DNA from: Lepidodermella squamata
Taxonomy: Eukaryota; Animalia; Gastrotricha
NCBI GenBank assembly: GCA_047495785.1
Contig: JBLDXI010000024.1
Span: forward strand, 1,674,001 to 1,738,000
Reading direction: 5' to 3'
Length of the DNA stretch: 64,000 nucleotides
Position 1 is the first letter of the stretch; every line of letters starts with the position of its first letter. Below are positions 16,856-52,146 of this stretch, one piece after another. The translations under genes and the position numbers were made by a program. Below the pieces are notes generated by a model that searched no databases, was not told the DNA's origin, and saw nothing but the letters and a program-made list of their open reading frames with translations.

Positions 16856-17089
16856 CAAAACACAATCGAAAAATCTTAAGACAAATCGTAAAAAGTGCAT
16901 TTTTTTTCTTGCGAATATTCTCACATTCAACATTCGAATTTGTACTTGAAATTTCAGGTGAAAACTGAGATATCGAGAAAAATCACGCTGCTTTTACTTG
17001 TCCGAATCGCATACCTTGGCGAAGTTCTTCGTGTTCCGAATTACCGGCTCTACGGATTGTCATCATGTTATGGCGCGTTTATTCGGGAA

Positions 17090-17500: not shown

Positions 17501-17503
17501 TAG

Positions 17504-21043: not shown

Positions 21044-21428
21044 GTACACTTTTATTTCAATATATTTTAACATTAGGCTAACATTTCTCTGAAAAATGCT
21101 TTGATTGTTGAATTTTCTGAAATTTTGTTTTTCATGACTAGGCTCAACCTGAACTTGAAGCTTCAGCACAGATCAATGTTGATGAACTATTGGAAAATGC
21201 TTCGGTGCTAGTTTTAATGCCGCTACGACGACTATTACAACACGCAAGCTCGAGTCCCCTGTTGTCGAAGCTGATAGGCAAAACCGCTGAATAATGACAA
21301 GTTGATAATGTAACCGGTGAGACCCGAAATTATCCGCCCGAATGGGTTAATAAATTGAAATGCTTCTGAAATTAATTTAAGTAAAACAAACCCAAGAATC
21401 ATAACATTTTATTGGGTTTTTTGAAAAT

Positions 21429-21500
21429 ATGAAAATTCTTGCGATTATCGCGGCTATTTTGGTCGCCATGGACGCAGAAGATGCGAAGCCGAAGCGTTTC
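21429..21500 (+). pseudogene. Relic of the 5' end of cyclase gene E
   Basis: atgaaaattcttgcgattatcgcggctattttggtcgcc.. encodes MKILAIIAAILVAMDAEDAKPKRF, against MKVLAIIAAIFVAINAADVNPIKPKRY at 45367. Confidence 0.75.
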
Positions 21501-21773
21501 CTATCATTTTCCGGCATTTCGTAGGCGAAAATCGTGTTTTGACCTTCCAGTTCCCCAAGTTCAACGGTAAATAATGAAAATTAAATGGGAGATCTACATT
21601 GGTATTAGACTAATCTGAAAGATTACAACAGTTTGACTTGGTGGCGCTACATTACATAGTCAGAAAGCAGTGGCAGCAGACCTTACCTACATCAGTATCA
21701 TAGAGTTGGTAGAAATTCATAAAAGAGTTCCTTACATGTAGCGAGGGAAAGAAATTAGCATCAGCAGCCAATC

Positions 21774-25623: not shown

Positions 25624-27095
25624 TTAGATGGTGCCTTCAATAATTGAGCTAATGAAGTGAGAGAACTTGCCGAGTCGCGTAAATATGCCCACGTTTTTTT
25701 GGCGGTCGGAATAGCGAGAAAAGATTCCCATCAATTCCCAACGCCCATTTTCCGCTTTTGTCCTGCATAGCAACGGGTTTCCTGTTTCGCCAACTTCGCG
25801 AAGACGGGAACTTGCAGCGCAGATCAAGTTTTGTGAGATGCCATCCTATATGGAAATAACATGTACCTTTCAAACGATAATTTCAATATCAAAAATAACC
25901 TCAGTTCTATAGCTATAGCCTCTGTTCGCCTTAGTGCATTCTTCGGGGCTCAATGTTTGAACACGAGTTTGCGATAATTCTTTTTCAAAATAATAACCGA
26001 ATCCAATTACGAAGCAAATTGAATTATTTTTAGGAATGCTGTTGACTTTAGCAGGCAAACAAACCGGTTGTATGATATCATTATATGAGAACCATGGAGG
26101 AAGAATTCGAATTACAGCTATATCATGAGCCGCGTCAACTCTGCCTTTCCGATATAAGTTGCGGTTGTAGCAAATGCGTTGAACTGGCTGCTTCGACGTT
26201 CTTTCGCTCAAATATTTTTCAAGGTGAATACCGGCCCATATTTCGTAATCCTCCGGATCTGCTGTTGATGAAGCGAAACAATTTGCTGCAGTTATGACAT
26301 GACGCCTAGAAACCAATGTTCCTCCGCAAACGTGGCTGCCATTGAACCGAACAGATACATACCATGGCCAAGAGTGAGGACGGGCGAAATATCCACCTAC
26401 TAACCTACCGTCGATTTTCATCGTTTCATCATATAGGTCGTAATCACGAGGTTTATCAGGTTGCCGTTTGACTCGGTTCACTCTGTTCAGCTGATAATCC
26501 ATTCCGTCGTATGGCTCAATTATAGGCTTGCCGCATGATTCCTCGAATTCATTAGACCAACTCGTTGCATTGCGGTATTTCGAAGAATTATTGGAGCAAT
26601 TTTCGTGAATCAACTCAGCTCGAAACGCCATTGGCCCAGCGGAGTTGGAAAATTGCGGAGTTTTAAATTCGACGAGTAATCCGGTATTGGGTGGTAGAAA
26701 AATCGGCGGTTCCGGTGTAGGAATAGAATCGCACGCTTTAAAGATAAGCTTATCTAGTCGATGAATTGGACCCTCGTAAACTCTTGCGTAAACTGACAAC
26801 CAGCCTCGCGAGCAACAGCCATTTTCTCCATCAATATCTAGGTCTGAAAATTGAGCAATAAAATAACTGAAGATTTTACTAAAAACTTTCAGTCCTTACT
26901 TAGTAATTTGAAGCTAACGCAAACATCGGATGAATTATCGACCTGGAAACTCCACGAGAAACGGCGAGAAGCTTGGTAAGATTCATTTCCAATCGGATAT
27001 TCAATCAGTACCCGCTTACCGATGTAGCTACCCAAGCTTGGCAACAAAAATTGGAGTACAATTATTGATAGACTGCAGATGAACGAATACCACAT
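25624..27095 (-). CDS. Secreted CUB-like domain plus trypsin-fold serine protease homologue (catalytically inactive)
   Basis: Three exons. Signal MWYSFICSLSIIVLQFLLPSLG; RVKR; RLVGGYFARPHSWPW; ITAANCF (His>Asn); HDIAVI; GETGNPLLC (GDSGGP lost). Confidence 0.8.
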
Positions 27096-32228: not shown

Positions 32229-33346
32229 TTATTTCAGCTTGTGCCTAATAACATCAAGAATATCGAAGGTTAGCAAAGAAATTTCAGAGGGAGAAAGAGT
32301 CGAATGTTCAATCACAGATAAAACAGTTGAAAAATGTTCGTTGATAATGCGGCGCCGTTCACTAACGGCCGGCTGTTCAGTCGCGACAAGAGTCTGCATA
32401 ATGGCCGCGATGTTGGGATCGACGCCGTTGTCGCTGTTGCTGCCCGCCTTCCGCTTCCTCGAACCGGCCGGTGTCGGAGTTGAAGCGGCCGAAGCGGGTG
32501 TTGAGCCGGAAGTTGATACTTGAGTTGCTTGACTTTCGAGGAAGGGTAGATCGTCATCGGGCGCGGGTGTGCTTGCACCGGAACTCGGCACGGACGCAGC
32601 CGAATCAGGCCTTGCACGCGGATCACCGGGTAAGTTCGACTTGGTGCTGTAAAAAAATAAGAAAAAAAATTAGAAAAAAATTATTAAAACAAAATTATCA
32701 AAATTATCAAATTAACACACCTTGTTTTGTAAATGATTGTGTCAGCCAAGAAGGTCATTGCCAAGTAATACGGAAACCCGCCCGACTTCGATTCGTCGGG
32801 GTTGGCGGCGGAACCGCTGGCCGTGCGCGTCTTGTGAGCTTTCGAGAACCGGTCGCGTAGATCGTTGCAAATGTCGCAGACGTCTTTGGCGGTGTACGGT
32901 CGCGACGGCTCCTTCGAAGTGGCCGGCATCCAGGGCAGACGAACAGCCAGCTCATTCCACAGCTTCGACCTGTGAACGCTGTCCTTGTAGAGAGCGTCCT
33001 TCGTGTTCCAGAGCGGCGGGTGGTATTTAACGAAATTGATGATGTCGATATTGACGGCGTGCTTGTGTTCGGGTAGACTCAGCACCGGCGACGAAATAGT
33101 CGAATGGCTGGCCTCGGCTTGCTTGGCAGGGTGGTACGACAGCGACTGGCTCGACTGTGGATAAGACGGCTGGCTCGGCTGTGAGTAGGGCGGCTGACTG
33201 CTCGAAATTTGCGAAAAAACCGGCTGGGTGTTCGGAATCGGCGAATAAACAGGCTGGCTGTCATCGAACTGACCCGAGACTTGCTCCGCTTGGCTTGAGC
33301 TTTTGCCGTTTTGCTGCGGTGCTGTTGACGGGAAACACTGCTCCAT
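32229..33346 (-). CDS. Harbinger ORF1 MADF/Myb-SANT DNA-binding protein
   Basis: Exons 33346-32721 and 32646-32229. IINFVKYHPPLWNTKDALYKD..R.KLWNELA..LRDRF (MADF); basic RKRK; C-terminal BESS-like helix. Confidence 0.8.
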
Positions 33347-34206
33347 TACGAAGCCGGCCCACTCTGGCAGCGAGTACTATAACTATAAGGTAAAAATAAT
33401 ATTTTTGGAATTCTTTAAAAATTTAAAAAAAATTGGAATTTTGAAATTTTCCAAAAATATGATTATATGAAAAAATTTGAAAAAAAATTATTTACTCACA
33501 TTTTTTATTTCCGTTTTTTATATTTTTATAGGGAACTTACTCGATCGTCCTAATGGCCATCGTTGACGCTAAATATCGCTTCACCTTAGTCGACGTTGGT
33601 GCCCCTGGTCGATTCAGCGACGGCGGCGTGTTTCAGCAAAGCGGCCTTTTCGACTACTGCAATAAAACAATACCTACCGAGGTGTATAATCTGCCCCAAA
33701 TCGAGCCGCATCACCGGCCGCTAAAGGCGAATCATTTTCTCGTCGGCGACGCGGCCTTCGGGCTGAATTGGAACTTGATGTCGCCGTTCCCCGGCCAAAC
33801 CACCGGTAATTTGTCGGCTGTCAAAGAAACGTTCAACTATCGGCTTTCAAGAGCGCGCCGAGTTGTAGAAAATGCTTTTGGTCTCGCCGCCGCCCGCTTC
33901 CGACTTCTACGCAAGCTCATGGAGCTTTCGCCGGAAATGGCTCAAGAAGCAGTCCTTGCGATAACAGTGCTGCATAATTTTGCGATGGCCGAAGTTTCCT
34001 CGTACGCGATCTCTGAACGTGAGGCCTGGGCTACCTACGAAGAAATGGCCCGCGAAAATGCCATCGGCAACTTTCAACCGGCTTGCCAGCGTACCCGGAA
34101 AGAATTGCAGGCCGGCGAAAAACTGCGCGGCAATCTCGCCTCGTTTTTCCTCACCGAAAAGGGCGCTGTGCCGTGGCAGGCAGAAATGCTAAACCAAAAA
34201 TTCTAA
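33300..34206 (+). pseudogene. Harbinger DDE transposase (HARBI1-like), N-terminus deleted
   Basis: Exon to 33389 (CCGAVDGKHCSITKPAHSGSEYYNYK), intron, exon from 33532 (GTYSIVLMAIVDAKYRF..SDGGVF..VGDAAF..FNYRLSRARRVVENAFG). In-frame stop just upstream at about 33270. Confidence 0.85.
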
Positions 34207-35226
34207 TAAACTTGTTCGAATGTTTTTTTTCATGAAATTTACATGCTTATGATCGTCTTGATGCGATGAGGTAGCTGGTTTCACAATAAATAAGAAATTT
34301 TATCTCCCGCGTTTTTTTAATGCCGACCCTGAAGAAAAATGTTAAAAATGTTGTAGTCACACACCTGGCTCGCGCCGCACGAAGCGCTATTGTTTTCAGC
34401 CGCGCACTTCGGACAACTTCGGAGAGAGAACAATAGAAACATCGGACGAAATTCGCCGCACTTCGGAGCTGATAAGACGTCCGAAGTTACGCACATGGGC
34501 TCCGAAGTTCGGATACGCCCGTCCGAACCGAAGCGCCGTCCGAAGTGTTTATAAATCCAGCATAAGAAGACACGTGATGATGAAGTCGCAACTATATTTA
34601 TCGCCGATCATCACAATTTAGTGGTCAAAACCTCGAAACATCAACAATTTTATAACTTATTCGCACCATGACATCGACATCGCGATTTTACTTGCGTGAG
34701 ATGTACTCGAAATTACGGCCAACTAGCAGCAAGCCGAGGAAAATCGCGTTAGTTGTCGCTTGTTCCATTATGGCAGCTGCAGTGATGGCTGAGGCATTTC
34801 AAAACCGGCCAATTCTAACTAGCCGTCGTGGCTCGTTCCACCAGGTAAGCCACTGTTGTTTATTTTTCAAAAATTATTTAGAAAAAAATATTTGATGCAG
34901 AATTCGTTCGGCCGCCAGAAAAGACCAGCAATCTCAAACTGCTCCATAGCGTGAAAAAATGGCTATTACGATTCGTTACCTCGCAAACCATTCAATCTAT
35001 CGATCAATTTTTGAACTTTTTCAATGTAAAAATTGTATCTGTTTTAATAAAATTGATTGTTGGGAAGGCACCGAAATTCAACACCGTAAAAAAATTGTCT
35101 AAAACCTCGGATTTTATTTCCAATTTCAAGAATAATAATTGTTGCACATGTCACAGATTCGATGATATTATAAAAGCATTTCAATTACAAAAAAGCGTTC
35201 GATTATTGAAGCAGCCATCAGCAGGT

Positions 35227-38200
35227 TTAGAAGAATCGCAACCAAGCCAACGCGATCAGGTTGATGAAAACCGACGGCAAGGCCATCGATGCGCCGCTCT
35301 TCGGCTCGACCGGTTTCGCGGGAACTTCAAGCGGCTTGATAACCCGCGGCGACTCCTTCAACATGCCGAAAATCGCAACCGGGCTGCCTCCGCTTTTCTC
35401 CAATCGCAAATAGGCCAGCGTGCAATAGGCCGAGCCGTCATTTGTCAGCTTATCCAGCTCACCGCCGACATTTTCAAACTGAATGATACCTCGCTCGGAC
35501 AGGTAGACATGAACCGGGTAGTTGTTGTTCATCGCCGTCGCGTAGTCTTCAGTCAACAGGCTGTCGATGCCAATTGCTACGACTTTACGATCTTCAACCA
35601 AGAACTGGGCACCCTCGAGCGATAGACCAGGGAAATTCTTTGCGTAAACCTCCGGCTTGTCCCAGTTTTTCAGGCCGAAACCAGTCGATAGGATGACGAG
35701 CGATTTTTCCGGAATTTTCACGCCGGTTCTCGTTTCCCAGTCGACGAGGTGCTGCTTCATGATTGAAAAGTTGTCCCTATCGCCGTAAGGTACATCGACC
35801 CGGAGGCAGAGAGGCCGTTCCAGAACATCAGGTAACTCAAGCGTATCACCCTTGCCGGCATCTGTGTGGCCAGGCGTGTCGAGATGAGTGCCGTAGTGGT
35901 CGTAGAAAACCAGTTTCTTGCCGTTTTCAGTCAAAGTAGGGCGAGAGATGTTGGAACGAATCGGAACCTTCTCAGCCGGGCCCCAGTTATAGCTCAGCGA
36001 GATGTAGTTATTCTTCGAACAACGATCGACTACGTCACTGTCTCCAGCATCGAAAACGACAACATCACCGAGATTAACGCGACGAGGTGGCTGCATCGAT
36101 TTCACAGAATCGCCCAGGGAAGAGCCGTCAGCCATCGGGGCGAAGTTGAACTTGAAGCCGTAGTACAGCTTGTTTTCATCGATGTCATCCTCGTCGAAGT
36201 TGTGCTCGGGCCGGTGCAGGTTTTCAATCACGGTCATTTTAGCGTCGAGCAGCTTGTTGCGAATGTCGTCCGGCAGCTGAACTTCGTCGAAAAAGCCGAG
36301 ACACAGCTTCTTTGACGCGGCTTCCTTGATCAACTCGGGGTCGTGCAATTTGGCGAGGTCAGTCGTCAAGAAAAGCACCATTGTCTCTTCGTGAATCTGT
36401 CAAAAAATATAAAGAAGTCTTCAATTTCTTCAATTTTTGAATGTAAATTTAAAAAATTTGAAATTTAAAATTTCGATTTAAAATTGAAATTTTTTTTAAT
36501 TGTTTTATTTTTGAAGTTTTTTATTTTGTTAAATTTTTTTAGTCTAACCAACTCAAATGTCGAAGCTGTTAATTTTTGAAATTTTTTGAAATTTTGTAAT
36601 TTGAAATTGAAGTTTGAAATTTGAAACTAAACATTTTTGAATTTTGAATTTCTTTAAGGCTCAAAATTAGCTACCTCTTGAAGCCTTTTCCTGATAGTCG
36701 TCAGCTCAGTAGTCTTGATGAATCGGGTTTCAACACAGCCCTTGGTCCAGAACATTGGGAAGTCCATCGGCATGCTGAAAGTCGTCACCTTATTCAACGA
36801 CGGATTGACTCCAATCGTGATTTCGTTGAACTTCAGCTTGTTCTTCTCTTGCGGCGAAGTTTTGAACACGTCCATCATAACTTCTCGCAGCGAGCAATCG
36901 CAGCGTTCACCCTGGTGGCGGATCACGCGACCGAATTGCCAGCGCTGGTTCGAATCGCTGCTGGCTTTAGCTCCAATTCCGGAGAATGTTTCCTTGATTT
37001 TCGTGCCGACAGACGAGATTTTATCCGTGGCCATTGTGACGATCGACTTGCTTTCTTCCGGCTTCTTCTCTTCCGGCTTCTTCTCTTCAGTTTTGACACC
37101 TGTTGGCTGGCTTTCAACAACCGGCTTTTTCTCCTCGGTTTTGACAACAACGCCGCTCATATCCATATGGTCGTAGTTGGGTAGCCCGAAAACTGCGAGT
37201 GGCGACGAGGTTCCGCCGACAACGCGAAGGTAAGTGAAAACGCAACGAGAGCCGACATCTGGGAACTTTTCAGCGCCATCGAAACGCAGATTGACGAAGC
37301 TGGGGATGTTCTTGCTGGCTAGGTAGCCGTGCGATGGCCAAAGATTCTTGCTCGACTTGGAATAATCATCAAGCGTCATGCCTAAAAATTGGAAAAAATC
37401 GTTAAAAAAAATGTCGAAACAATTCAGGCAAAAAATTATATACAAAATTAAAAATTTAACAATTTAAATTATAATTAAAATAATTTCAAAAATGTTTAAA
37501 TTTCAAATTTTTCAAGGTTGACTTACTGTCAATGCCGACCGCAACAGCCTTGCGCTCTTCAACCAGCCATCTTAAAGCATCAACATCGATTCCGGGGTAG
37601 TCCTTGACGTACTTATCAACTGTAGACCACCGCTTGCCAAAGCCAGTATTGATCAAAATCGAACTGTACTCAGGAATGTGGATATTCTTATCCTTTTCCC
37701 ACTGCTCGAGATGGCCGCGAGTGACCATGTAATTCGCAGTTTCGCCGAATCGGACGTTGATGCAAACGCAGGGCGAGAAGAAGAAATCATTGTTGAGATT
37801 GGCGACATTCGCTTGGCTTTTATCGAATCGATACGGCGCAATCAAACTCGACCCAGTTTGGCCTGAGAATCGCAGCCAATGTTCGCTGTTCGTCTCGTTT
37901 CCAACCGTGATTTTGCGCTCGGATAACCGCGGCAGTTCGAAGCCTTGAAGTAGTGGCACGTTCTCGGACAACATATTCCGGCCGAAGCTGACGATTTCAT
38001 TCGCTTTTTCCTGGCAGAATTTGTTCAGCTTTTCATCGCCCTCGAACAGAACCATGTCAGCGAGATTGACAAGCGCCTTCAGCTGAACCTTTTCGTTGCT
38101 GTAGATCGACGTAGCATTCGAAAACGGCATGAAGATCAGCTTGAAACCGTGGTATTTTTTGTCGGATTTAACAATGGTCAGCAGGTCGATTTCGGCTGGC

Positions 38201-38874
38201 AGATCGATGTTTTCGATGAACGGAATGTGGTCGTTGACCAACGACTCTCGGCAACTGTTTTCAAGCGGCTTGAGGCGCTTCAGAAATCCGATCTTAACCT
38301 TCTTCTCGCGCAGTTGCATCCGAATGTTGGTGTTCATTTTCGATTCGACAATATCGTTCGACATGATCAGCAAACAGTCTTCGGGAATCTATCGAAATTT
38401 CAAAATTTTAAATAAAATTTCAATTTTTCAATAATTTTTTCAACAATTTCAGATTAATTTTGCATGCAAATTTTGACGAACCTTCTCTTTTGTGGCCAAG
38501 TCTTCAAAGGCCAGAAACTTGACGCAGAAGCAGCCGCGTTGATGGTCTTCAATCAGCTTGGTGTAGTCAGTTCCCTTGTAATCGCTCGGAATCGGGATGG
38601 TCACCATAGTTCGCCGGTACCGCATTGGGTCGATGCCGATATTGATGTACTTGCCAAGCATTTTCGCCGTTTCATTTCCGGCCTTGTAGTAGTCGACCAA
38701 ATCGCCGGCATGTTCCAGCAAAACGCCGTCACCCTCGTCCGACTTGATCTCGGAGCCAAGTTGGAACCGCTTCGGTTTCGTCGCCGATAGTGGCTTCATT
38801 TCGACCTCGCCGGTCGCGCCCACCAGCGTTGTCACGGCAGCAAAACATATCAACAATTTTGCGAAAAGTTGCAT
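35227..38874 (-). CDS. GPI-anchored two-module Cyclase-family protein, gene C (module 1 inactive, module 2 intact)
   Basis: Exons 38874-38482, 38388-37527, 37381-36675, 36396-35227. Signal peptide; QTGSSLIAPYR (dead); KTEEKKP linker repeats; HYGTHLDTPGH and HVYL..FENV (intact); tail KSGASMALPSVFINLIALAWLRFF. Confidence 0.85.
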
Positions 38875-39148
38875 CCTTCCGCTTTGGAAATAAAATGTAT
38901 GTATGTATGTAGATTGATTTGTTTGAAAAATGATAATTCTCAACCCGAAATCGCCGGCTTATAAAGGGAACCAATCATTATTATTATTATAGATTGCGCA
39001 ATAACAATTCGATTGTTTAAAAACCGTGACGTAACGTAGTTTTATTAGCTTGAAAAAAATCGATTTGTATTAAAATTCAGTTTGAAACGATGAGCAGATC
39101 ATAGCCATGGTTATTGTTTCAGTTCTTATAGTTGATAAATTACTTTGA

Positions 39149-42100
39149 TTAAAATCGAACGAAATAGACCAAAAACAGGGCGACAATGCCGGTGAAAACG
39201 TAAGGAGCCGCGTTCGAGCCTTCGTTGCCTTGCTTAGTTGCCAGAGTTTCGACTTCAACAGCCAGCGACGGGCGGGAGGTTGGGAGATCGGGTAGGCCGA
39301 ACAAGGCAACCTGAGCTGCGGTTCCTTTCTGGTAGCGGATGTAGGACATGACTGCCCGACCGCCGAATCCGTTCAGGTAGTCGAGATCGCGGCCGATGTT
39401 GACAAAGGTGATGACTTTTTGACTGGCCAGGTATTCATGGGTTGGGAATTTGCCTTGGTTAGCGAGCTTGAAGCTGTCGAGAGCCATGCCTTATTATAAA
39501 AAAAATTCAGAGTAAAACTGAAATTTGGTGTGCGGAGTGGAAACCCTAAATTGAGGGTTCAGCATCAAATTTGAGGCTCCAGCACCCATAGCACTCGATT
39601 TTCCCAAAATATGGTTTTCGAGTTTCAAGTAATCCCAAGAATCACTATTTTTCATTATGATCGATGACTTTACGAGTTTTACTCCAGCCTTCAGAGCCGA
39701 TACCGATTCCAAGTATCGAATTTGCAAATCAGTGATTTTTCCGATATCAGAAGTTATGGAAGCCAGCAATCGCAAATTTTCATTATACCCCTATTCTTTA
39801 GGGTATCAGGTAGCTAGAATAAATATTCCCAAGGTCATGGAGGGGTCCAATTTCGATCAAGAAAAGAGTCGGAAAACTTGAGAGTACCTCGTTTGTGGGC
39901 CACAGAAATCGCATAAAAACCGTAGCAGCACAATTGTGGCGCAAATATTTGTTTGCACTGGGTCAAAATAATAATATGACTCACTCGTACAAATCGCGCG
40001 CTTAACTAGGTCAGGTCATTCGATTTAATGATGATTTTAGCAAAAAGAGAAGCTGAGAAAAAGTCGTCGTGCTTAATGACGAACCTGAGGAACCTCAATT
40101 TTCAACCCAATTAAATTTGAACTTACTATCGATGCCGATAGCAATCGCTTTTCGTTCCTCAACCAGAAACTTGGCAGCCTCGAGCGAAAGGCCCGGGAAA
40201 TTGACCTGATACACCGAGGGTAACAGCCATTTATTGCCATGATCGGTATCGATAACAATCAAAGCGTAGTCTGGGATTGTTTGCTTGGTTTCCTTCTCGA
40301 ATTTCTCGATATCTTCACGCTTGATCGAGTAATCAGGCCCAGCCGGGATCTTCACCTTGACCAGCACTGGGTTATCGAAATAGGTCGGCACTTTCGTAGT
40401 GTCGAAGGCGTTTGAGAAGTAGTGGAAGGGCGCGTCGAAATGCGTGCCAAAGTGGTCGGAGAATCGAATTTTATCCGAATCGTTGACTCGAGTCGGCGCG
40501 ATGACGCCCTGGAAAACGGGGATTTTTTCGGCCGGGGCGAAGTTCTGGCTCAAAACTCGGACACCCTCCCACGCGTTCGGCTTCGAGCAACGGGCGTAGA
40601 CCTCGGCAGTCCACGGCTGGTTGTCGAAAACGACCAAATCCGCCAGGTTGATGTTGCGCGACGGGTTCATCTTCAACGAGCGAAGCAGCGACGTTTCTTC
40701 CTTCATCGGCGCGAAAACAAACTTGAAGCTGTAGTACACCTTGTCCTCGGAGATTTTGTCGTCGTTGAACACGCCGTCTTCAGGCCGGGCCAGGTTTTCG
40801 AAGAAAGAAATGCCGGCTTTGACGAAATCGTTCTGCAGATTGGTCGGCAGTTTTGATGAACCGAAAAATCCGACGGTGATCTTCTTATCAGCGAGGGTCT
40901 TGATGATTTCGCCGGTTAGAGCTGTCGAAAGGTCCCAGGCCATGAAAATCACAATGTTACCGGGTTTGACCTGGAAAAAGAGACAAAAAACAATTCTTGA
41001 TTGTAATTTTATTCAAATAAATTTTTTTCATTAATCAATTTAAATAAAAACATTCCCGGTTTAGCGAGTGATAGCGGCTGAAAATACATTTTTTCTCAAT
41101 TTTTGAAAAAAAATCTGGGAAATTTAGAGGCATATAAATTTGCTAATGAGCGTCCAAAATGACCTACTAATTATTCACCTTTTTATGCGAACATATTTTA
41201 AATTTCCAAAAATCAGGGAAAATTCGGAAAATCGCAGCAGCTGGAAATTTTGGTCCAAATTTTTTTAATTGAAAATTCAGTTTTTTGTAATTTTCAAATG
41301 ATCTATTTACCTGGCTAAGCTTTGCCTTGATCACAGCCGAATCGACAGATTTGATGAAATAGGTTTCCAGGCACCCTGCAATGGCTTTGCTAGGCAGATG
41401 AGCGCCGTGATCTTCCGCCTTCAACGGAGTCGTGAACGTAGTCACCTTGTTCTTCGTCGGATCAACCGTCAACTCGACTTCATTCGCCAACAAGCGATCT
41501 TTCAAAACCATCGCCAACTTTTGAGTGCTAACCGGGTGAACATCGATATCAGCGTTCTTCTTGATAACCGCGCCGAGTTGCCAACGGGCTGAAACCGAAG
41601 GCCCGGTTTCTTCGGATGAAACGTCGTAATTCGGCAGGGCGTAGATTGCGACGGGAGACGCGAGGCTTTCAGCAATTCGAAGCGGCGCGATGATACAACG
41701 GGCACCAGCTACGTTTTCCGGGAAGGTCGAATCCTCGATCCGGACATTGGCTAGAACTGGAATGTTGCGCTCGGCGAGGTAGCCATGAGCTGGGTACTTA
41801 TTTCCGACACCATCGTCGAGCTGCATGGTATCAATACCGATAGCAATTGCCTTTTTCTGCTCAACCAAAAATCGCGCAGCATCGGCCTCAAGAACCGGGT
41901 AGTTCGAGCCGTAAACATTCGCGTTGTTCCAATATTTCACGCCGAAACCAGTGTCGAGGAAAATGATTGACTTGTCAGAAATCGATCGCTTCGCAACGAG
42001 GTCTTCAATCATTTTCGCCGTGATTTTTTGGGTATTCGCGGGAATTTTCACGCGAACACACGGCGCGAAATAGGTGTTATCGGGCAATCGCGATACGGTT

Positions 42101-43022
42101 GGCTTGTCAAGGTCGAATCGCTTCGGCGCCACGACGTGAGTGCCGGTTCGGCCGGAGAATTTCAGCCAATTTTCACCACTGACTTTGCTACCAGCGAACC
42201 TAGCGCGTTGAACATCGCTTGGCACCGGGTAATTATCGCTGAGAATGTTTTGCGTCAAAATCTGAACCCGACGCTCGGCGCAGTGCTTCGTCATTCTTTC
42301 ATCGGTTTCGAACAGGGTCAAATCAATCAAATTGACTGAAATATCGCCGTTCGAGGTCGTGACCGAGGTGCCGTTTTTGAATGGCGAGAAGACGAATTTG
42401 AACGCGTAGAGAATTTTAGTCGACGCCTTGGTAAGATCGAGACTGGCTGGAATTTCGACATTTTCAATCAGATCGATGCCACTTTCGATGAGCAGCTTTC
42501 GCGAGGCCGAGTCGATAGGGAAAGCCTTCTGAATGGCAAAGGTGAAGCGGCGGCGGGCTGATTTCAGCTTATTCAACAGATTCGCATCGAAATAACGTGA
42601 GTCGAAGCTGTCCGTGAACAGGATGAAAGATCCGATTGGAAGCTGGTAAAAGGTTCAATAAATAAAATCGAGCTTCAAAAAATGTAAATTACATTATCGA
42701 TGTATCCTGCAACTTCCTTGAAACCAAGTACGAGGGTCTTGATGCAGCCTTCGCTTCTAATTCGTTCAGCGATGTTCGACCCGGAAATTGTTGAAAAGGT
42801 CGTGAACTTGTATGTTTCGAAATAATCGATGCCGACTGATATTTCGGCCTTAGCCATCATGCCCTTGGCATCGCCGGCCTTTTTGTACTCAACTGGCGGC
42901 TGAACTTCAGTTACTGAACCTTCTCCACTACCAATAACGCGGCTCAGGGAGTAACGACGCGGCAAAGTATTGTTCGCGTTGGCGAAACAAAACAGCGTTA
43001 AAATTAAAATTAAAATGTTCAT
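39149..43022 (-). CDS. GPI-anchored two-module Cyclase-family protein, gene D
   Basis: Exons 43022-42693, 42642-41311, 40970-40127, 39489-39149. Signal peptide; RTGTHVVAPKR (dead), then HFGTHFDAPFH; tail GSNAAPYVFTGIVALFLVYFVRF. Confidence 0.85.
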
Positions 43023-43118
43023 GGTATAAAAAATGTTCTAAAAAAAGTAAAAAAATCCAGCTTAATCTCGTCTTCCAACTTTACTCATAACTCTTCACAA
43101 AAATATGTGTTTCATCAC

Positions 43119-45367
43119 TCAAATACGGCTGAAGAAATAGGCGAAAACAACAGCAAAAATGCTGCTAAAGATGGATGCATTCACGGCGCCTGAGCTTGAT
43201 TTGCCAGTTGAAGCCTGAGTGCTGAGCGAGCCATCAGGCAGGGCGAAAATAGCGGCCTCGGCAGCGGTGGTTTCGAAGCGCAGGTACGAGATGACGCACT
43301 GGCCCTTGATTTTGTCACCCAGAGGCGCGAAATCGAGGTTCAGAATGGCGGGAATGTTCTTGCTGGCCAGGTAACTGTGAACTGGGTAGGTTTTCGGGGC
43401 ATCGAGCGAAATCGAGTCGATACCGATAGCTTTCGCTTGCATGGATTCGACCAAATACTTGGCGGCCTCCATATCAAGAGTCGGGTACGAGGTCAAGTAA
43501 GTGGGGTTTCCCCAGAAGTTGGCGCCATTGGTCGTGTCGAGGAAAATGATCGATCCGTGCACAAGCTTTCAGGTTCAGAAAAAAATGTGAAATGTAAATA
43601 TATTGTTTACCAATATTCGCAAGCAAAAAATCCATCAGATCAATTTTTTTTTGAGATGCAACTCAAGAAATTGTACCAAATAAAATTGCACCTTCATCAG
43701 AAAAGAGCGCCAGGTGGGGCAATTTTACCATTTCACTCACCGCCTGTTTTATTTCACAGCTTGAAAAATGGTACATTTTCTTGGGACGCGTCTCATTTAG
43801 CGCGCGCGGGAAAATTCTACATCTTTTGGTAGCATAAATTGCAAAGTAAAATAAATATTCAATATACTAATGAAACAAATACCGTAATGGGTCCTAAATA
43901 TGGACAAAACACGATTTTCAATTAAAAAAATGGCTTTCATCGTCCGAAGAAAGGGAAAAAAATGACAAAGCTTCGTCCGAGAAATCTGGATGGGCAGGTA
44001 AATTTTGGAGAATCTAGGAGCCCACCTTGATTTAAAAAAAATCTCGCATAAATTTGAACACGTCATTTTCATACGCTAAACTTAGAACTCAGTCAAATTT
44101 TATTTCCTGTTGCGCCCAGGAGGCGATTTATTTTTCGGAGAAATATGCCAATTTTTAGATATATTCGAGGCCCAAGTTCAAAGTGCCCAAATTTAGGGTG
44201 ACCAAATTTTTGACCCATTACGGTAATTTATTAAGATCGATGAAAATTATGATTAAATTTTACCTTGTTCTTAGCGTCATAATCTTCAAGCATTTTCTTT
44301 GTGATGACGAAATTTCCCTGCTTGTAGGGCGGAGTAATCTTGATGATGACGTAGTTGCCGAAAACGCCGTCATCCGACAAGCCGGTGACGTTGGGCAGGG
44401 AGGCACCGAAACGGCTCGGGGCTGCGATGTAGGTACCAAGGTCGGTCGAGAACTTCAGGAACTTGCCGTCATTGTCATACTGCGGGCGAATGGTGCTATC
44501 GGTGACAGGGTACGTTTCCTTGGTGACAATGTCGCGATTGAGGACAGCAACGCTCGTCTTCTTATCATTGCAGTACTTTTCCAACTTCTTGGTCTCATCA
44601 TCGATAAGGACAACATCGACGAGATTGATCGTAGCCTTGTAGTCCTTCTTCGAGTCGAACTTGTAAACCGAGGTGTTGTTCTGGAAGAAGTTGGCGACGT
44701 ACTTGAACGCGTAGTAGCTCTTTGTCTTGTCAACGATGCTGATCGGGACGTCGAGATTGCGGATGAAGGCAATGTTCTTATCTTCGAGTTCCTTGCGAAC
44801 CTTATCGGACAGAGGTTTCAGCGTCTTCTGGAAGCCTAGAATAATGTCCTTGCCCTTGATCACCTTGAGTTGATCCTCGAACTCCTTCTCATCAACGTCT
44901 TTGGTCAAAATGACGATAGACTTTTCGAAGGTCTGTATAACGAATAAATTGAATTTTAATTTCACATTTTTATGAAGTTTTACCTGCTTATTTGTCGCAT
45001 TGGTGACCTGCTTTGATAATTCTTCCAGGCTCATGAATCGGGTTAGGACACAGCCGTCGGTTTTATCGACCTTGCCCTTGTAGTCGGACGGGGCGCTGAA
45101 GGTCAAAGTAGTCAAACCGCGGTTCTTCTTCTCGTCATCGAGCTCCTTGCCTTCCCCGATAGCAACGCTAACATTGCTGGCAAAAACGGTAAATGCAATC
45201 GAGGAATCCGCGGGCTTGTAGGCAAGCGGGACACGATCGATCCTGGACCCATCAGTGTTCATGTTTTTCATCATAGAGCTGATAGGATAACGCTTCGGCT
45301 TTATCGGATTTACATCTGCCGCGTTGATAGCGACAAAAATGGCCGCGATAATCGCAAGAACTTTCAT
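43119..45367 (-). CDS. GPI-anchored single-module Cyclase-family protein, gene E (inactive motif)
   Basis: Exons 45367-44984, 44932-44264, 43565-43119. Signal peptide; DLGTYIAAPSR; AIGIDS; tail SSGAVNASIFSSIFAVVFAYFFSRI. Confidence 0.85.
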
Positions 45368-45683
45368 ACTTTCAAAAAATCTAAAAATAATAATTGATTC
45401 TTAAAATTTTTTATTAAATCCATTTCAGATATTATAGAGTTTTTTAGTTGTTATAAGCCATCCAGGCGTGATGAGTCTCACCGGTTTTACATTTTATCAG
45501 CTCTATTAAAAGCAACAAGTGTAGAATTTTTCCTGTTTAAAGAGGTCTTACTCTGTTTTTTTTCTGAGACTTTCGATATAGTATTTATGAATCATAGTAA
45601 TAATATTTAAATCATAGAATTCTTTTTACAGTGTTCAAAGTGCTGAATAATAATTTTTGAGTCACTGAAGGCTTCTATAGGCT

Positions 45684-48600
45684 TTAGATAAAGGCAAGAC
45701 GGGCTAGCAAAGCTGAGACCAAGACGACGGCCATCGAAGGCATCGAAGCAACACCGGCGCTCTTCGTCTTCGACTTGTCGTTGTTCATCGTGCTTGGGTC
45801 TTGCTTATCGGCCTCGGCGACTGGAGGCTCGAGCTTGCGAGTAGTAGTCGTCGTAACGGCCACTTTTTTAGGCGTCACGGTGGTAGTAGCCTGGGCCGTT
45901 GTTGTTTCAGGCTTGGTTGGCTATATTTATAAAATGATATTAAAATTAGTACCGAACTATTTTCAAATATTCCAATTTGATCGATTATAAAAGCTCGATA
46001 TTTATATTGATTTATCATAAATAAGCTAAAAAAAGTTTGCTGGGATAGAACTTTTTTGTAGGTTATGAGATGTGAGAACGCGTGTCATCATCATTCATGC
46101 AATGATGAATCACGCCGATCATCGGCTCAATCACGCAAATCACAACAGATAGTAAAACTTGGATTCGCCATTCACAAAACTTAAAGCCCAGAATTTGTTG
46201 GCAAAATCTTATATTTTCCTTTCCCTATTGACTCGCGATATTTCGATAGAGAAATAATTGGGATGCAAGAATTCGAAAACCCCATATTTTTATCCCTTCC
46301 CATGCGGAGCAAATCCAGTATCAAGTTGGTCACGTGACCTTACCTGATGTCACACCTGAGCGGTTATCTCGTGAACGTTGATAGCTAGGATGCCGCTCTC
46401 AAAGAAAAAAATCATCGGCGTGATGATATCTACCTTAAGACTCGACAGGCTGTATGAAAATCATCTGTGCTGAAGCCTCAAATTTAGGGTGCATACCTAG
46501 CCCTTCACTGCGATAAGAAATTTCGGGAAATAAAATAAATTTAGCCAAAAATGGTTTTGAACGATTTTTTGCTTGGGATATATTGAAAACTGAAATGATA
46601 AATATTTGTACCTTTTTCGTCGACGAGATAGTCGTGGTTCCAACTGTTGTCGAGGTCATAGTCGTGGCAGCTTGAGTAGTAGTAGTAGTAGTAGTCGAGG
46701 TTGTCGGTGAAACAGTCGAAGTGCTCGAGGTAGAATCGGTCGTCTTTTCAGAATCAGAGACAGGCGAACCCGAAATAGTCGTCGTGCTCACAGCAGTCGT
46801 AGGTGGCATTCCAGTCGTCGATTCGGACCTGGACAGCGGCGTGACCGTGGTTGAATCAGCGGTTGTTAGCGTCACCTTGGCCTCAGAAAGAGCTTTCGGG
46901 GCAACTGACCTCGCGATCGGCGAGACAGTCGTCGAGTCGTAGCCATTCAAAGCAAACAGACCCAGGGGAGCATCAGTGCCATCGACAGATCGCAGGTAGG
47001 TCAACACGCAGCGGGCGCCATTTTCAGCAATCAGCGAGTCGCTCAGGCGAAGATTCAGCAGGGTCGGAATGTTCTTCGAAGCCAAATAACCGTGAGTCTT
47101 GAACTTATTATCCTTGCCATCATCCAGCGACGGCGAATCAATGCCAATAGCAGCTACTTGGTACTCTTCAACCAAGTATTTAGCGGCGTCTTCTTCCAAA
47201 ACCGGAAAATTGGTGCTGTAGGTTTCAGTCTCGTTAATCCAATGATCTTCGCCGAATTCGGTGTGAATCACAAAGATGGCATCTTTGGGAATGCTGCTGG
47301 TCTTAACGGCATCCTTGATCAAAGACTTGGTGATTTTATTCTCACCAAGCGATGAGTAAGGAATATTGACGCGGATGCAGGGTGCGAAGAAAGTTTTCTT
47401 CGGCAAATCAGCGGTTTTCGACATTTTCTCGTCGAAGTGATAAGGTGCGGTCAGGTGCGTGCCAGTCTGGCCGGCGAACTTCAGCCAGGTGCCCTTGGTT
47501 GGAGTTTCAATTCTCATCGACGGCCGGCTAAGTCCAGGAGCCATCGGGTAGTTGTCAGTATTAAGGCGGTGGCTCAGAACGGAGACGTCCTTTTTGGCCT
47601 TGCTGCAGTAGCTGCTCAACTTATCGTCAGCTTCGTACAACACAACATCGGCGAGGTTGACGACAGTGAGCAGAAAGCCACCCTCCTCTTTCGGTTCGGT
47701 TTCGGTTTTGAAGACCGAAGTGTTATTCTTGAAGAAGCTGAAAACGTGAGAGAAAGCGTAGATAGGCAGCTTGGTGTTTTCAAGATCTTCCTGCTGCTTC
47801 AGGTCGAGATTTTCGAAGAACGGAATCTTGGCGTGGGTGATGGAATCCCGGTCTAACTGTGACAGTCTGCCGATGTTGCGGACGAAACCGAGCGTCAACC
47901 TGACGAAATTCTTATCTTTGACTTCCCCAAGCACTTTGCCGGTGAACTTTGCCGAGTCAAACTTCTCTGTGATAATGAACAGGACGTAACGCACTGGAGT
48001 AGACTCGGTTATTACAACTGGCAGCTGCAATACAGATCGCGTTATTTTAAAGAGAATAAACAAAAAAATTAGTTAAAGCTTAATTAAGGAATATTGAGAC
48101 AACAGGAGACAACTGAGAACAAAAAATTGACAAATTAAATTATTTGTATTATTTTTGAATTTTCTACCAAGAGCTGGGAAATCGATAACCGAAACCAAAA
48201 ATAAATGGAAAATTCTAAATACAAATTGTTAAATAGTTAATAATCGTTAAATAGTCTAAATCCGACTTGATCGGCCCGCTACCAATATGTGTTTTACCTT
48301 TTCATAAAAAGAAATAAGGTCGTCGAAGGTTCCGATCTTGGTCTCGAGACAGTAATGGCTCTCAACAAGGCCGCTGAAATCTTCATCAGGCTTCGGCGGC
48401 TCGCTCAGGTGCACTGAAGCTGTATAGGTTGTAACGCCGTAGTTGTTGCCGGTGCTGACCGAGTTAACATCCACCGTGGCAGTCATGCTTCGCATCGTGC
48501 TTTTCTCGCCATCACCTCGGAAATATTCAAGGGTCGAGAAATCGACATTGCTGCCCTGAATTGACTTCTTATTCAGAATAAAACCAAGCTGGTACCGGTT

Positions 48601-48690
48601 CAGAGCTTGTTTCGACGAAGGGACAATATTGCTGGCTGCCAGCTGAAACCCAGCCAACAAAACAGCGCAGGTAAAAAAGTTCGATAACAT
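45684..48690 (-). CDS. GPI-anchored Cyclase-family protein with a Ser/Thr mucin-like stalk, gene F (inactive motif)
   Basis: Exons 48690-48298, 48024-46612, 45920-45684. QTGTHLTAPYH; long Thr/Ser-rich region; tail SAGVASMPSMAVVLVSALLARLAFI. Confidence 0.85.
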
Positions 48691-49662
48691 TACAATTGCT
48701 TATCTGTGTCTCAGATTTTTACAGTAAGGAAATAGGATATAGGAAGACTCGAAATAATATTTGGCGAACAAAGTCGAGAAATATGGCGCTGCGGCCTCAA
48801 GTCGGCGAGTTCGCACGCGACCAATCATTCTAGGCGCGCGACTAGTCGATTACGTAACACGTTTAACGCGCACTTTTACACATGGAATGAATCACCGGGG
48901 CGCCATAATATCAACATTTTTTTACTAGGAAAATTATCGCCAAAAAACGTAGATGAAATTGACTGTTCATGTATGAATCACACTTTTAATGGTTTAATGG
49001 TTTAAAATTATTTTACATAATTTATATGGTTCATTTTCTTAAATAATTCACACAATCACACCAGATGATTTCTTAAGGTGGAACTTTTGAAAAGCTTATT
49101 TTTGCAGTACTACCAAAGAACGCCTATATTTTCCATAAAAACCATTTTTACCTACACAAAATAAATCCAAGCCGCAGGCAAGGCCGTTTAGGTGGAATTT
49201 ATTCACATAATTCCTCCACTTGGTAGAATATATGTATACATAATTTTTTGCAGTAGCTACGCATCAGGATAATTTTAATATAGCCCAAGCATTTCCTGCC
49301 TTGTAATGAATTCTATTGTCATTTTATTCTGGAATTTAAAATGTGGGACATGAGGATATGTCCGCCAAACTTTTCATGTCTAAACTGTTTGAATCTGGCA
49401 TAGTTGGTTCTTCTATAAAAAATCCGGGTCGGCACTTCAGGTCTTCATTATTTCTTCTCTCGCAGCTCACTTTCCATCGGGTGACTTTATCAAAATAAAA
49501 ATAAATAAAAGAGTTAATCATTCAATCAGCTTTATTCCTTTCTTTTATCCGAGTTTGTATGAAATTATAGAAAATTTTTATAGAGAGTTTTGATTATTTT
49601 TTCGCGACGAATAATTCAAATATTTTTTTACAATTATTTTACAATAAATATAGGTAAAGCAC

Positions 49663-52146
49663 TTAATTTGATGCTGTAATAAAATCGATGCATAAATGGC
49701 AGGGCAGTAGAAATAATAAGGTAGAAATAATAAATTGGTACACGATAATAAGGCTGTGTTGTTGTTCGAGGCGGAATAGTTTGTGAGAGGAGAAACCGGA
49801 GGAAGAAGCTAGGTCGGCATCGGTGTGGCCGAATACGGCCGCCGGCGACCCGGTGCCCTTTTCAGCGCGAAAAAACACCACAAGACACACACCGCCCTGT
49901 TCAGGGAAGCGTGACAGCGACGCCGTGGCCAAATTAACAACGGCTATTGCGTCATTTTGCGCCAACAGCAAATGCGACGGAAATGAATTACTCGATACCA
50001 GCCGGGTGTTGTCCAACCACGGGCTATCAATACCGACCCCGATGACCTTGCGCTCTCGTAGTAGCCAATCGATATCGCGCGAATCTACACCAGGGTGATC
50101 TATTACGTAATCGGCTGGTTTGTCCCACTTAGCGCCATGACCTGTTTCAATCAGGACAATCGACTCATCCGGGATAGTCCGATTAAGCCGCTTCTCCCAA
50201 CGATTGAACAGCCCGAGAGATACCGAACCGTTTAAAATCGGCTGATTATCTGCGATTTTAACGCATGGCGCTAAAGAATACCGAGGCGGTAATGAGTCGG
50301 TAGAATACCCGGTATAAATGAAGTGGTAGGGTGTATCGATATGCGTCCCGTAATGATCGGAAAAATTCAACCAGTCATAAGATTTCCCTTTCGACGAAGC
50401 TTTGTGCCGTAGAAAAGGCCTCGTGACGCCCTGATGTGATATCGGTATTGTTTCCGGGTAAAAATCGTGGTTTAGGATGAACGGATTGCCTTCAGCGCGT
50501 TTCGAGCACATTTTTTTAAGGTCGCCAGTCGCTGTAAGCAGACTGACCTCAGCTAGATTAACGAACTCCATGTAAGCTCCAGGTTGCGTCCGGGATGTCC
50601 GATTGTCGAATGGCGCAAATACCATGATGTAGCCGTAGTAAGTGACGCCGCCTTGCGTGACGTCGAGGTTGTCGGGTATTGCTAGGTTGTCGAGGATCGA
50701 AATGCCGCGTGAGTATAGGTCGCTTCTCAGGCCCTCGGCTATGGGGCGGTTTTTTCGCAGGAAACCGGTTATCACACGCCGTTGAGCTAAGAAGTCGATG
50801 AAGTCAGCTGACATTGTTTCGACCGCGAACCCAAATATCACCATTAGGTCACCCGGCGTCTAATAAAATAGAAGAAAAAAAATAGTTTTCGATATAATAT
50901 TATGCATTTTTCATTCAAGTTTTCCTACAAACCCAACTTTCTGATGTTAGGAAACGAAATTGTTTTAGATAATTTACGTTCAGCGTACATAAAAATAAAA
51001 AATAAATAAAAAAATAAAAATAAAAAAGATGGGCCTGTCCGGGATTTGAACCCGAGACCTCTCGCACCCAAAGCGAGAATCATACCCCTAGACCAACAGG
51101 CCGCGTGATAATTGAAAGGCCATAACTCCTTTATGACGCGAGTGCAATGCGTACGTCACTCTTGCAGAGAAAGCAAACAATGGGCACGCAGGTATAAAGT
51201 CATAATGAACATGAGCACAGACTCTCATCTTCTAGCTACAATCATAGAGCACAGCGAATTGCAAATTTCAAGAACAAGATGTGCACCCGAAATTAAAATG
51301 AAAATTTGAGCAAAAATTTTAAGAAGGATTTTTTACTATTTTACGAATCAATCAAAGCAGAAAAATGTTATTTGCTTCTAGACAATTTCCCAATGAAGAA
51401 ATATGATCGCCTAATTCGATCAAAATTAAATTTAAAAAATTATCCCGAAGCAATTCAAACAGGCCTTGAAAACTAGCCTCAAGTTGACAATAGCGTTAAA
51501 TCAAGAGCAAAAAATTTGTTATTTTATAGCGCAGAAAGTAGACTGCTCACCGTATTTCTTTCCTTTAACATGATTTAATAATAATTTTCATTCAATTTTC
51601 CGGAAAATTGCTATTACTTACGCTTAAAAACTGATTAGTTATCCGATCAGCAGTGACCATCGGCTCGTTGTCGAGAACGTACGTCGTGACGCAGCCTTTC
51701 GCCGAAAACGACGGCGGCTCACGGCCGGAAAACGTCGTATGCCTCTCGTCCGAGTCTGAATCGCTCGACCCGGTATTTATCACCAGGTTATTCACAATCA
51801 ACCGCGCCATGCCGTCATCGCCAACACGCGGCTCTACAACATGTTCGAAAACCGCGCAGACATCACTTTCGCTGTAATTGTAAATCATGAGACCCATGTC
51901 GAATCTCTGCAACTGCTGCTGTTGTTCCTCGAGGGCGTTAGCAGGCGGTAACACGACGCGAGACACGAAATAGTCGTCATCTTCGTCGCCGAACGTGGCG
52001 TCGTAGAATAGGCGCGTTTCGTCGACCTGCGCGTTTTTCGGCGGCGCCGACAGAGGTTGCGAATTGGCGATAAATTGCGACTGGTAAACTATTAAATCGA
52101 TTAAAATTAGCGGGAAAATCGAAATCACGCATTTGCTGCCTCTCAT
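49663..52146 (-). CDS. Secreted or membrane-anchored Cyclase-family protein, gene G
   Basis: Exons 52146-51622 and 50859-49663. Signal peptide; HYGTHIDTPYH; HPGVD; GVGIDSP; GTGSPA; hydrophobic C-terminal segment. Confidence 0.85.
51031..51102 (-). tRNA. tRNA-Pro: tRNA-Pro (anticodon UGG), inside the intron of gene G
   Basis: Reverse complement GGCCTGTTGGTCTAGGGGTATGATTCTCGCTTTGGGTGCGAGAGGTCTCGGGTTCAAATCCCGGACAGGCCC folds as a cloverleaf: anticodon arm CTCGC-TTTGGGT-GCGAG, T-loop GTTCAAA. Confidence 0.96.

Follow-up and report, generated by a model that had tools for sequence, protein, structure and literature searches.

The window analysed here, 64,000 nucleotides of the gastrotrich Lepidodermella squamata (GenBank assembly GCA_047495785.1, contig JBLDXI010000024.1, positions 1,674,001 to 1,738,000 of the forward strand), harbors seven genes of the Cyclase family (PF04199). 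Five of them, g1 to g5, form an array on the minus strand at 35227-52146, and two further copies, gene A and gene B, are located elsewhere in the window. The seven genes probably represent an old, clade-restricted cyclase subfamily that is secreted, mostly tethered to the membrane and composed of pseudo-dimer units, some active and some dead. This reading is carried by the observed domains and fold, the states of the metal motif, the splicing of the two-module genes, the orthology and the monophyly of the dead modules. New are a cryptic, apparently degenerate cyclase fold in each unit, conserved chains of four folds that join a dead to an active unit, and a single old clade of pseudoenzymes.

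Gene models and cyclase modules

A Pfam hmmscan located seven PF04199 modules on long minus-strand open reading frames (ORFs) between 35227 and 52146. Six of them reach 67-89 bits (E 1e-18 to 4e-25; gathering threshold 23.1 bits). The seventh, in g3, is split by an intron, and its exon parts reach 19.3 and 29.1 bits. Genes A and B were recognized by a motif scan and the ORF listing. The total amounts to nine modules in seven genes, one each in g1, g2, g3, gene A and gene B and two each in g4 and g5. The original prediction, five consecutive minus-strand genes with seven modules and nine modules including genes A and B, is confirmed by hmmscan, motif scan and gene models. The models were derived from open frames, canonical GT..AG splice sites and an alignment of the paralogues; all seven contain a single, terminal stop only. 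The window has a G+C content of about 42% and short GT..AG introns and therefore belongs to an animal-type genome.

Gene g1 (49663-52146, minus strand; exons 52146-51622 and 50859-49663; Pfam E 1e-21 and gene model) encodes 573 residues with a predicted signal peptide, a degenerate cyclase-fold domain, one module whose His-His-Asp-His motif is intact and, at the C-terminus, a long hydrophobic tail. The position of a further glutamate, discussed below, is occupied by valine. Gene g2 (45684-48690, minus strand; exons 48690-48283, 48024-46612 and 45920-45684; 685 residues; Pfam E 7e-21) combines a predicted signal peptide, a degenerate domain, a metal-less module (GQTGTHLTAPYH), a Ser/Thr-rich stalk of about 150 residues and a tail resembling a glycosylphosphatidylinositol (GPI) signal. 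Its first donor site (48283 or 48298) and the junction 46612/45920 are predictions only. Gene g3 (43119-45367, minus strand; exons 45367-44985, 44932-44264 and 43565-43119; 499 residues) has the same parts without the stalk, its metal-less module reading TDLGTYIAAPSR. An in-frame intron of 51 nucleotides (GTAAAA..ACAG) occurs at the same place as the splicing of the paralogues, according to the predicted junctions.

Two genes of the array contain two units each. Gene g4 (39149-43022, minus strand; exons 43022-42693, 42642-41311, 40970-40127 and 39489-39149; 948 residues; Pfam E 3e-18 and 4e-25) comprises the metal-less g4a (GRTGTHVVAPKR), the intact g4b (DHFGTHFDAPFH; valine at the glutamate position) and a GPI-like tail. 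Gene g5 (35227-38874, minus strand; exons 38874-38482, 38388-37527, 37381-36675 and 36396-35227; 1043 residues; Pfam E 3e-21 and 1e-22) consists of the metal-less g5a (GQTGSSLIAPYR), a Lys/Glu/Pro-rich linker, the fully intact g5b (DHYGTHLDTPGH) with a KynB-type glutamate, and a GPI-like tail. Gene A (3651-5287, minus strand; exons 5287-4904, 4849-4333 and 4210-3651; 486 residues) encodes a predicted signal peptide, a degenerate domain and an intact-type module with the glutamate (DHFSTHIDAPYH), without a hydrophobic tail. Gene B (18893-21070, plus strand) is an inverted, metal-less copy of g2 identified by blastn, in which the exon for stalk and tail is degraded.

Metal site and fold of the modules

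In isatin hydrolase A of Labrenzia, the manganese ligands are His69, His73 and Asp75, and a proton relay is formed by His79, His207 and Asp193. Gln219 of this enzyme, at a GLQC or GLAS signature, matches the conserved Glu172 of the kynurenine formamidase KynB. Glu172 of BaKynB lies within a conserved I(L/I)E, supports the second zinc and is KynB-specific (PMC6117287).

Isatin hydrolase A (5nnb) was matched by phmmer with an E-value of 3e-10. An AlphaFold model of g5b, a single-exon module and the sole cyclase module modelled, reached a predicted local distance difference test score (pLDDT) of 78.6. Foldseek matched it to isatin hydrolases at the top and also to kynurenine formamidases and a cyclase-phosphotriesterase, at E 2e-15 to 1e-8 and target template modelling (TM) scores of 0.68-0.78, in agreement with the family fold of a distorted beta-barrel and a helical face. 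The E-values of 5nna, 8f9x and 4j0n were about 2e-15, and 4co9 and 3krv were matched too. The predicted membership in the Cyclase family is borne out by the HMMER check against PF04199 and by the fold match to isatin hydrolase (5nna, Foldseek E 2e-15).

The states of the motif H-x-G-T-H-x-D-x-P-x-H were read from an alignment of the modules. Four modules have an intact motif, and five have lost it. The intact copies occur at 35872-35907 (g5b), 40428-40463 (g4b) and 50329-50364 (g1), all on the minus strand by motif scan, and in gene A, where the glycine of H-x-G-T-H is replaced by serine. Degenerate copies were located by the same scan at 37834-37869 (g5a), 42124-42159 (g4a), 44417-44452 (g3) and 47443-47478 (g2) on the minus strand and at 20369-20404 (gene B) on the plus strand. 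The equivalents of His69, His73, Asp75 and His79 are all present in g5b, gene A, g1 and g4b. Modules g2 and gene B keep His73 and His79 alone, g4a keeps His73 alone, and g3 and g5a retain none of the four; two to four of the four key residues are thus substituted in the metal-less modules. Of all modules, g5b (QFEN) and gene A (AIEN) are the sole ones with the KynB-type glutamate; valine, leucine or alanine takes its position in g1 and g4b, both with valine, and in all metal-less modules. Equivalents of Asp193 and His207 are present in every module. The GLQC/GLAS signature of isatin hydrolases is absent from every module in the alignment, the intact ones reading FENV, IENI, FVNI and VVNL.

The family label fits all nine modules, the enzyme label only g1, g4b, g5b and gene A. 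These four are predicted hydrolases because the His-His-Asp ligands and the His/His/Asp proton relay are kept. A mixture of enzymes and pseudoenzymes, as originally proposed, is supported by the loss of the metal motif in the other five.

Degenerate domain ahead of each module

About 200 residues with no Pfam match come before each module. A first piece with the pattern R-W/F/Y-Q-L-G ... G-C-[ILV]-E-T-x-F-I is followed by a small alpha/beta piece. An example between the two modules of g5 was delimited by alignment: the first half (RWQFG ... GCVETRFI) occupies 36675-36953 on the minus strand, and the second half the first 100 or so codons of the next exon (36396-36097, minus strand). The region was modelled on residues 72-282 of P0008, the orthologue of gene A (60% identity), using 28 aligned family sequences. 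The model reached a pLDDT of 82, with poor values for the first 60 residues.

In a Foldseek search of the PDB with this model, PF04199 structures took all ten top ranks (best E 1.6e-4). VIA-align against 48,161 representative chains placed cyclase-family members on the first six ranks with Z 8.8-9.5, followed by the next fold at Z 5.7; 151-171 residues were aligned, spanning the whole model. A shape search of the ESM Atlas returned a 'Cyclase family protein' as top match (TM 0.54/0.64), and a feature search of the same atlas with the degenerate domain gave no usable match. Between orthologues, the degenerate domain is conserved at 50-65% identity, compared to 49-64% for the catalytic domain. 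On the strength of this model and its matches, the region is probably a degraded copy of the cyclase domain that arose by duplication.

The active site of KynB, an obligate dimer, is completed by the partner subunit (PMC4243253). The cyclase fold of the degenerate domain and the dimerization of the bacterial enzymes suggest that each unit of about 450 residues probably mimics the family dimer in one chain. The fold searches back such a pseudo-dimer, in which the two folds would pack against each other. Isatin hydrolase is likewise a homodimer whose partner helps to build the active site.

Transcript evidence

Read-contig evidence covers 35200-41199 only and originates from the runs X1 and X3. 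Their contigs skip introns with CT..AC ends, equivalent to GT..AG on the minus strand, and leave the introns uncovered; for this reason both runs behave as RNA assemblies. Spliced contigs back the g5 junctions 38482/38388 and 36675/36396 (introns 38389-38481 and 36397-36674) and the g4 junctions 41311/40970 and 40127/39489 (introns 40971-41310 and 39490-40126). At 41311/40970, the loose end of an X3 contig past 40974 encodes DSAVIKAKLS of the upstream exon. Three of the four contig-backed junctions connect pieces of the two-module genes g4 and g5. The junctions of g1, g2 and g3, of g4 exons 1/2 and of g5 exons 2/3 are predicted only.

The dead and active modules of g4 and g5 are thus joined at transcript level. 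Spliced contigs across g4 place its dead and active units on one message. In g5, the active module is spliced to the exon that encodes the linker and the last part of the dead module. The g5 orthologue P0006 is an unbroken ORF of 1045 residues in a 3264-nucleotide Logan contig (run SRR32069676).

Secretion and anchoring signals

Signal peptides and GPI signals were called by hydropathy and pattern heuristics. A hydrophobic h-region is present at the N-terminus in all seven genes (best 10-residue Kyte-Doolittle mean 2.2-3.4); the one of g1 contains an aspartate. These signal-like segments suggest that all seven proteins enter the secretory pathway, as had been predicted.

The C-termini of g2 to g5 show small residues of the SAG, SSG, SNA or SGA type, a spacer of 5-8 residues and a hydrophobic end of 14-17 residues, with 0-7 residues after the best 12-mer. 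The tail of g1 is less typical, with about 25 hydrophobic residues and four residues after them. Similar tails occur in the orthologues P0001, P0006 and P0009, the one of P0001 being more typical than that of g1. At the C-terminus of gene A no hydrophobic tail was found, and the same holds for its orthologue P0008. Gene B has lost the tail exon, of which a degraded trace is left at 21219-21285. The expected tails on most genes were therefore recovered as a small-residue site with a hydrophobic stretch of 14-25 residues on the five array genes, genes A and B having none. From these patterns, the five array proteins are most likely GPI-anchored at the outer face of the cell membrane.

Orthologues, phylogeny and age

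An exhaustive profile search retrieved 5759 cyclase-family proteins. The extra degenerate domain was found in only about 13 cluster representatives, derived from ENA/JGI metagenomes or Logan assemblies. A word-indexed protein search with the g1 module yielded one close relative and four bacterial-type kynurenine formamidases only. Scanning metagenome contigs with an alignment revealed only bacterial-like cyclases of 23-38% identity and no family members.

Members of the array are 25-45% identical to each other. Best matches were P0001 for g1 (54% identity), module 1 of P0006 for g5a (50%, with the same loss of the metal motif), module 2 of P0006 for g5b (54%), P0008 for gene A (60%), P0009 for g4b (43%) and P0017 for g4a (33%). 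A tree of 42 cyclase domains was calculated with IQ-TREE. The family forms a clade with a support of 100/100, and all metal-less modules form a single clade within it (100/99), which is sister (97/88) to the group of g4b, g5b and gene A. Modules g1, g5a, g5b and gene A pair with their best matches, and g4b is sister to P0009 and P0011. P0017, itself metal-less, falls into the dead-module clade and pairs with g3 instead of g4a (93/87), which makes the assignment of g4a the least certain. The monophyly of the metal-less modules indicates that the metal site was lost once, before the species split, and that the dead lineage has been kept since.

P0001 and an upstream ORF in L001 are 50-54% identical to g1. 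In both L. squamata and a related metagenome animal, g1 or its orthologue adjoins a transforming growth factor beta (TGF-beta) type I receptor gene; no array follows the orthologue. The DDX23 helicase of this metagenome animal shows about the same identity (67-74%) to its nemertean, mollusc, crustacean and insect counterparts and thus points to no single phylum. The likely g4 orthologue is represented at a separate locus (L005) by the adjacent ORF calls P0017 and P0009. Genes g2 and B are 91-92% identical in the nucleotide sequence of their exons (blastn), with a synonymous divergence (dS) of 0.21 and a ratio of nonsynonymous to synonymous divergence (dN/dS) of 0.31, the latter indicating purifying selection.

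By sequence comparison, the array is a set of old paralogues and not the product of a recent burst, since the paralogues are only 25-45% identical and orthologues of g1, g4, g5 and gene A exist at 43-60% identity. The pair g2/gene B is the sole recent duplicate. A recent expansion is not supported. Specific to the clade are the degenerate cyclase-fold domain that each module has in front of it and a conserved layout of pseudo-plus-active genes. Intronless members, each a single ORF with signal peptide, degenerate domain, cyclase domain and tail, were observed at L007 (10001-13512) and L010 (788-2254). L007, from the related metagenome animal, carries two of them in tandem.

Proposed model and alternative explanations

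In the proposed model, each protein would enter the secretory pathway. The five array proteins would be held by a GPI anchor on the outer face of the membrane, some of them atop a Ser/Thr-rich stalk. A unit of about 450 residues, a metal-less degenerate cyclase fold followed by a recognizable cyclase domain, would fold back on itself as a single-chain pseudo-dimer. The units of g1, g4b, g5b and gene A would act as metal-dependent enzymes that hydrolyze an amide, lactam or ester, and the five ligand-less units form one old pseudoenzyme clade kept by selection. With the dead unit fused before the active one, g4 and g5 would present four cyclase folds and one catalytic centre next to the membrane. 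GPI anchoring, intrachain pairing and catalysis enter the model as predictions.

Several points weigh against this model. The profile-profile comparison (hhalign) of the degenerate with the cyclase-domain alignment is weak (P 0.004, probability 8%), though colinear; common descent from the cyclase domain is for this reason likely, not proven. The model of the degenerate domain derives from the orthologue P0008, not from a window sequence, and its TM-scores are modest (0.36-0.56). The unusual tail of g1 may instead be a transmembrane helix, and genes A and B are tail-less. Modules g1 and g4b have neither the KynB glutamate nor the GLQC/GLAS of isatin hydrolases. The RNA nature of X1 and X3 is deduced from intron-free joints within the limited stretch covered.

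The weak hhalign result, the missing Pfam match and the low-confidence start of the model would also suit an unrelated domain of the swivelling beta/beta/alpha type, so that the units were no pseudo-dimers; proteins with swivelling domains (LD-carboxypeptidase, RraA, DRTGG) indeed score Z 5-5.7. This is unlikely, as PF04199 members rank first in three independent structure libraries, with full-length alignments (model 1-211 against chain 1-200), a clear score gap to the next fold and an hhalign match colinear with the structural alignment. Tandem two-cyclase proteins of other animals, among them one from Lingula whose first domain is degenerate, have taken the same route. About equally improbable are type I or tail-anchored membrane proteins, or plain secretion, in which the hydrophobic stretch would not be a GPI signal. 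The heuristic nature of the call, the g1 tail of about 25 residues with four after it and the tail-less genes A, B and P0008 favor this option. Against it, the hydrophobic end of g2 to g5 is only 14-17 residues long and reaches within 0-3 residues of the stop, SAG, SSG, SNA and SGA triplets are placed upstream at the usual distance, and Ser/Thr-rich stalks precede the tail, after which a cytoplasmic segment is absent. Orthologues and other cyclase proteins of animals show this pattern as well.

That the metal-less modules and genes (g2, g3, gene B, g4a, g5a) are decaying pseudogene material is very unlikely. In favor of it, catalytic ligands have been lost, gene B lies within a rearranged inverted duplication and lacks its tail exon, and g2, g3 and gene B have no close orthologue among the matches. 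The reading frames are intact throughout, however, and RNA contigs cover g5a and show its splicing to g5b. Its orthologue, P0006 module 1 (50%), shows the same loss, and P0017 (33% to g4a) is metal-less too. The support of 100/99 for the dead-module clade dates the loss before the species split, and the dN/dS of g2/gene B is 0.31. Pseudogene decay was rejected on the grounds of intact frames, RNA coverage, the old single clade and this ratio. Even less probable is a recent horizontal transfer from bacteria with subsequent amplification. The best-characterized relatives are bacterial, the sequence search gave only bacterial-type kynurenine formamidases beyond one close match, and the tree does not nest the family within other animal cyclases. 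Spliceosomal introns, signal peptides, stalks and GPI-like tails contradict such an origin, as do a GC content matching the surroundings, an own long-branched clade with orthologues in related animals and the same secreted, tailed architecture in other animals. This origin was rejected because of the introns, the GC content, the separate long-branched clade and the tailed animal relatives. An old, secreted and mostly tethered subfamily with active and dead pseudo-dimer units thus remains the preferred explanation.

Neighbouring features in the window

Genes A and B flank a cluster at 8229-18133 with a 3,4-dihydroxyphenylalanine (DOPA) decarboxylase-like, a sugar-transporter-like, an aromatic amino acid hydroxylase and an arylalkylamine N-acetyltransferase-like gene. 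A functional tie of the cyclase genes to this aromatic-amine cluster is conceivable, because enzymes of the Cyclase family act on aromatic amides.

Gene B is part of an inverted segmental duplication (18888-21483, plus strand, versus 48695-45313, minus strand) that comprises g2 and the start of g3. After gene B follows a degraded copy of the signal-peptide exon of g3 (MKILAIIAAILVAMDA..., 21405-21521), with 80% nucleotide identity over 21365-21483. Two ORFs resembling trypsin-family serine proteases are located between gene B and the array at 22933-26799 (minus strand), the first with a CUB-like N-terminal part, as judged from the translations only. The stretch directly past the 3' end of g5 (32684-34206) contains two ORFs, one resembling a MADF domain on the minus strand and one resembling a Harbinger-type DDE transposase on the plus strand. 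Transposons may have been involved in the assembly of the array; in the related animal, the orthologues of g1 and g4 are located at separate loci.

Two introns of the array have contents of their own. The first intron of g1 (762 nucleotides) contains a tRNA-Pro(TGG) gene on the same strand (51031-51102, minus strand). Within the 637-nucleotide intron of g4, the DNA-like run X2 reaches a depth of about 5500 at 39600-39799, compared to about 70 elsewhere, with many contig breaks, which suggests a high-copy repeat.

Architecture in other animals and known systems

The architecture was surveyed in the best 150 matches and their cluster members, 165 proteins altogether. A hydrophobic C-terminal tail after the last domain was found in 47 of the 165, and 29 of these 47 have a signal-like start as well. 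Tailed single-domain proteins occur in Priapulus, Branchiostoma, Patella, Pecten, Haliotis, Exaiptasia and a millipede, and tailed tandem two-cyclase proteins in Lingula and Glandiceps. Lineage-specific surface tethering, as originally proposed, is not supported, since signal peptide, cyclase domain and tail are common across invertebrates (priapulid, mollusc, millipede, brachiopod, hemichordate, amphioxus and sea anemone). Overall, the initial observation has stood, together with the family, the secretion signals and the pseudoenzymes; lineage-specific tethering and a recent origin of the array are not supported.

Bacterial KynB and the isatin hydrolases IHA and IHB (PF04199; PDB 4co9, 4cog, 5nna, 4j0n) share the fold and the HMM family with the window modules. 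The intact modules have the same His-x3-His-x-Asp-x3-His motif, the second histidine and the aspartate of the relay (His207, Asp193) are found in all modules, and the KynB glutamate is kept in g5b and gene A. The bacterial enzymes act as soluble homodimers of 200-260 residues in the cytoplasm, whereas the window proteins, of 490-1040 residues, appear to be secreted and probably lipid-anchored. Each of their modules has a preceding degenerate fold, and more than half are without metal ligands. An extracellular location would be unusual for the hydrolysis of N-formylkynurenine, a step of tryptophan catabolism.

Invertebrate proteins predicted as 'isatin hydrolase-like' or 'kynurenine formamidase-like', such as those of Patella (XP_050411847), Pecten (XP_033731480), Priapulus (XP_014681467), Branchiostoma (CAH1258016) and Exaiptasia (XP_020903586), have the same signal-like start, small-residue site and tail. 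They differ in being single-domain proteins of about 290 residues without the degenerate domain, and form a tree group separate from the window family. Lingula anatina (XP_013407427, XP_013417957) and Glandiceps talaboti (XP_077991362) resemble the window proteins in signal peptide, two cyclase folds per chain and hydrophobic tail. The first domain of XP_013417957 has lost the metal motif, an independent parallel to the dead-then-active order in the window. Both domains of these tandem proteins are recognized by the HMM, in contrast to the degenerate domain of the window units, and their duplications are independent of the window family according to the tree. Chains of four folds were not seen among the Lingula and Glandiceps tandem proteins.

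The Arabidopsis CYCLASE1 group of plants comprises eukaryotic, secreted PF04199 members with a single domain. The group is not known to contain GPI tails or pseudoenzyme tandems. Characterized members of the Cyclase family are almost exclusively small, soluble and microbial. No study of animal cyclase-family proteins was found in a literature search; the names 'isatin hydrolase-like' and 'kynurenine formamidase-like' appeared, within the literature searched, only in a study of shrimp growth and metabolic response.

Biological meaning

Animals widely deploy the Cyclase family as secreted, probably membrane-tethered proteins, a form that is apparently unstudied. A far-reaching and speculative extension, to which little weight is given here, would be an unstudied class of GPI-tethered ectoenzymes from cnidarians to amphioxus. 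In the clade of L. squamata, its chains would consist of two or four folds with only the membrane-proximal fold catalytic, the dead folds acting as partner subunits or ligand holders. Aromatic amides outside the cell could serve as substrates, for example N-acyl-arylalkylamines or formyl and lactam compounds derived from tryptophan. They are conceivable because genes A and B flank the cluster for tyrosine hydroxylase, DOPA decarboxylase and arylalkylamine N-acetyltransferase.

The genes offer a compact natural example of the evolution from enzyme to pseudoenzyme within one chain. The path would lead from a dimeric enzyme to a single-chain pseudo-dimer and further to a doubled unit, with a monophyletic dead lineage retained for a long time. 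Natural constructs for the role of the dead partner are available in gene A or g1 with one active unit, in g3 with a dead unit only and in g5 with a dead plus an active unit.

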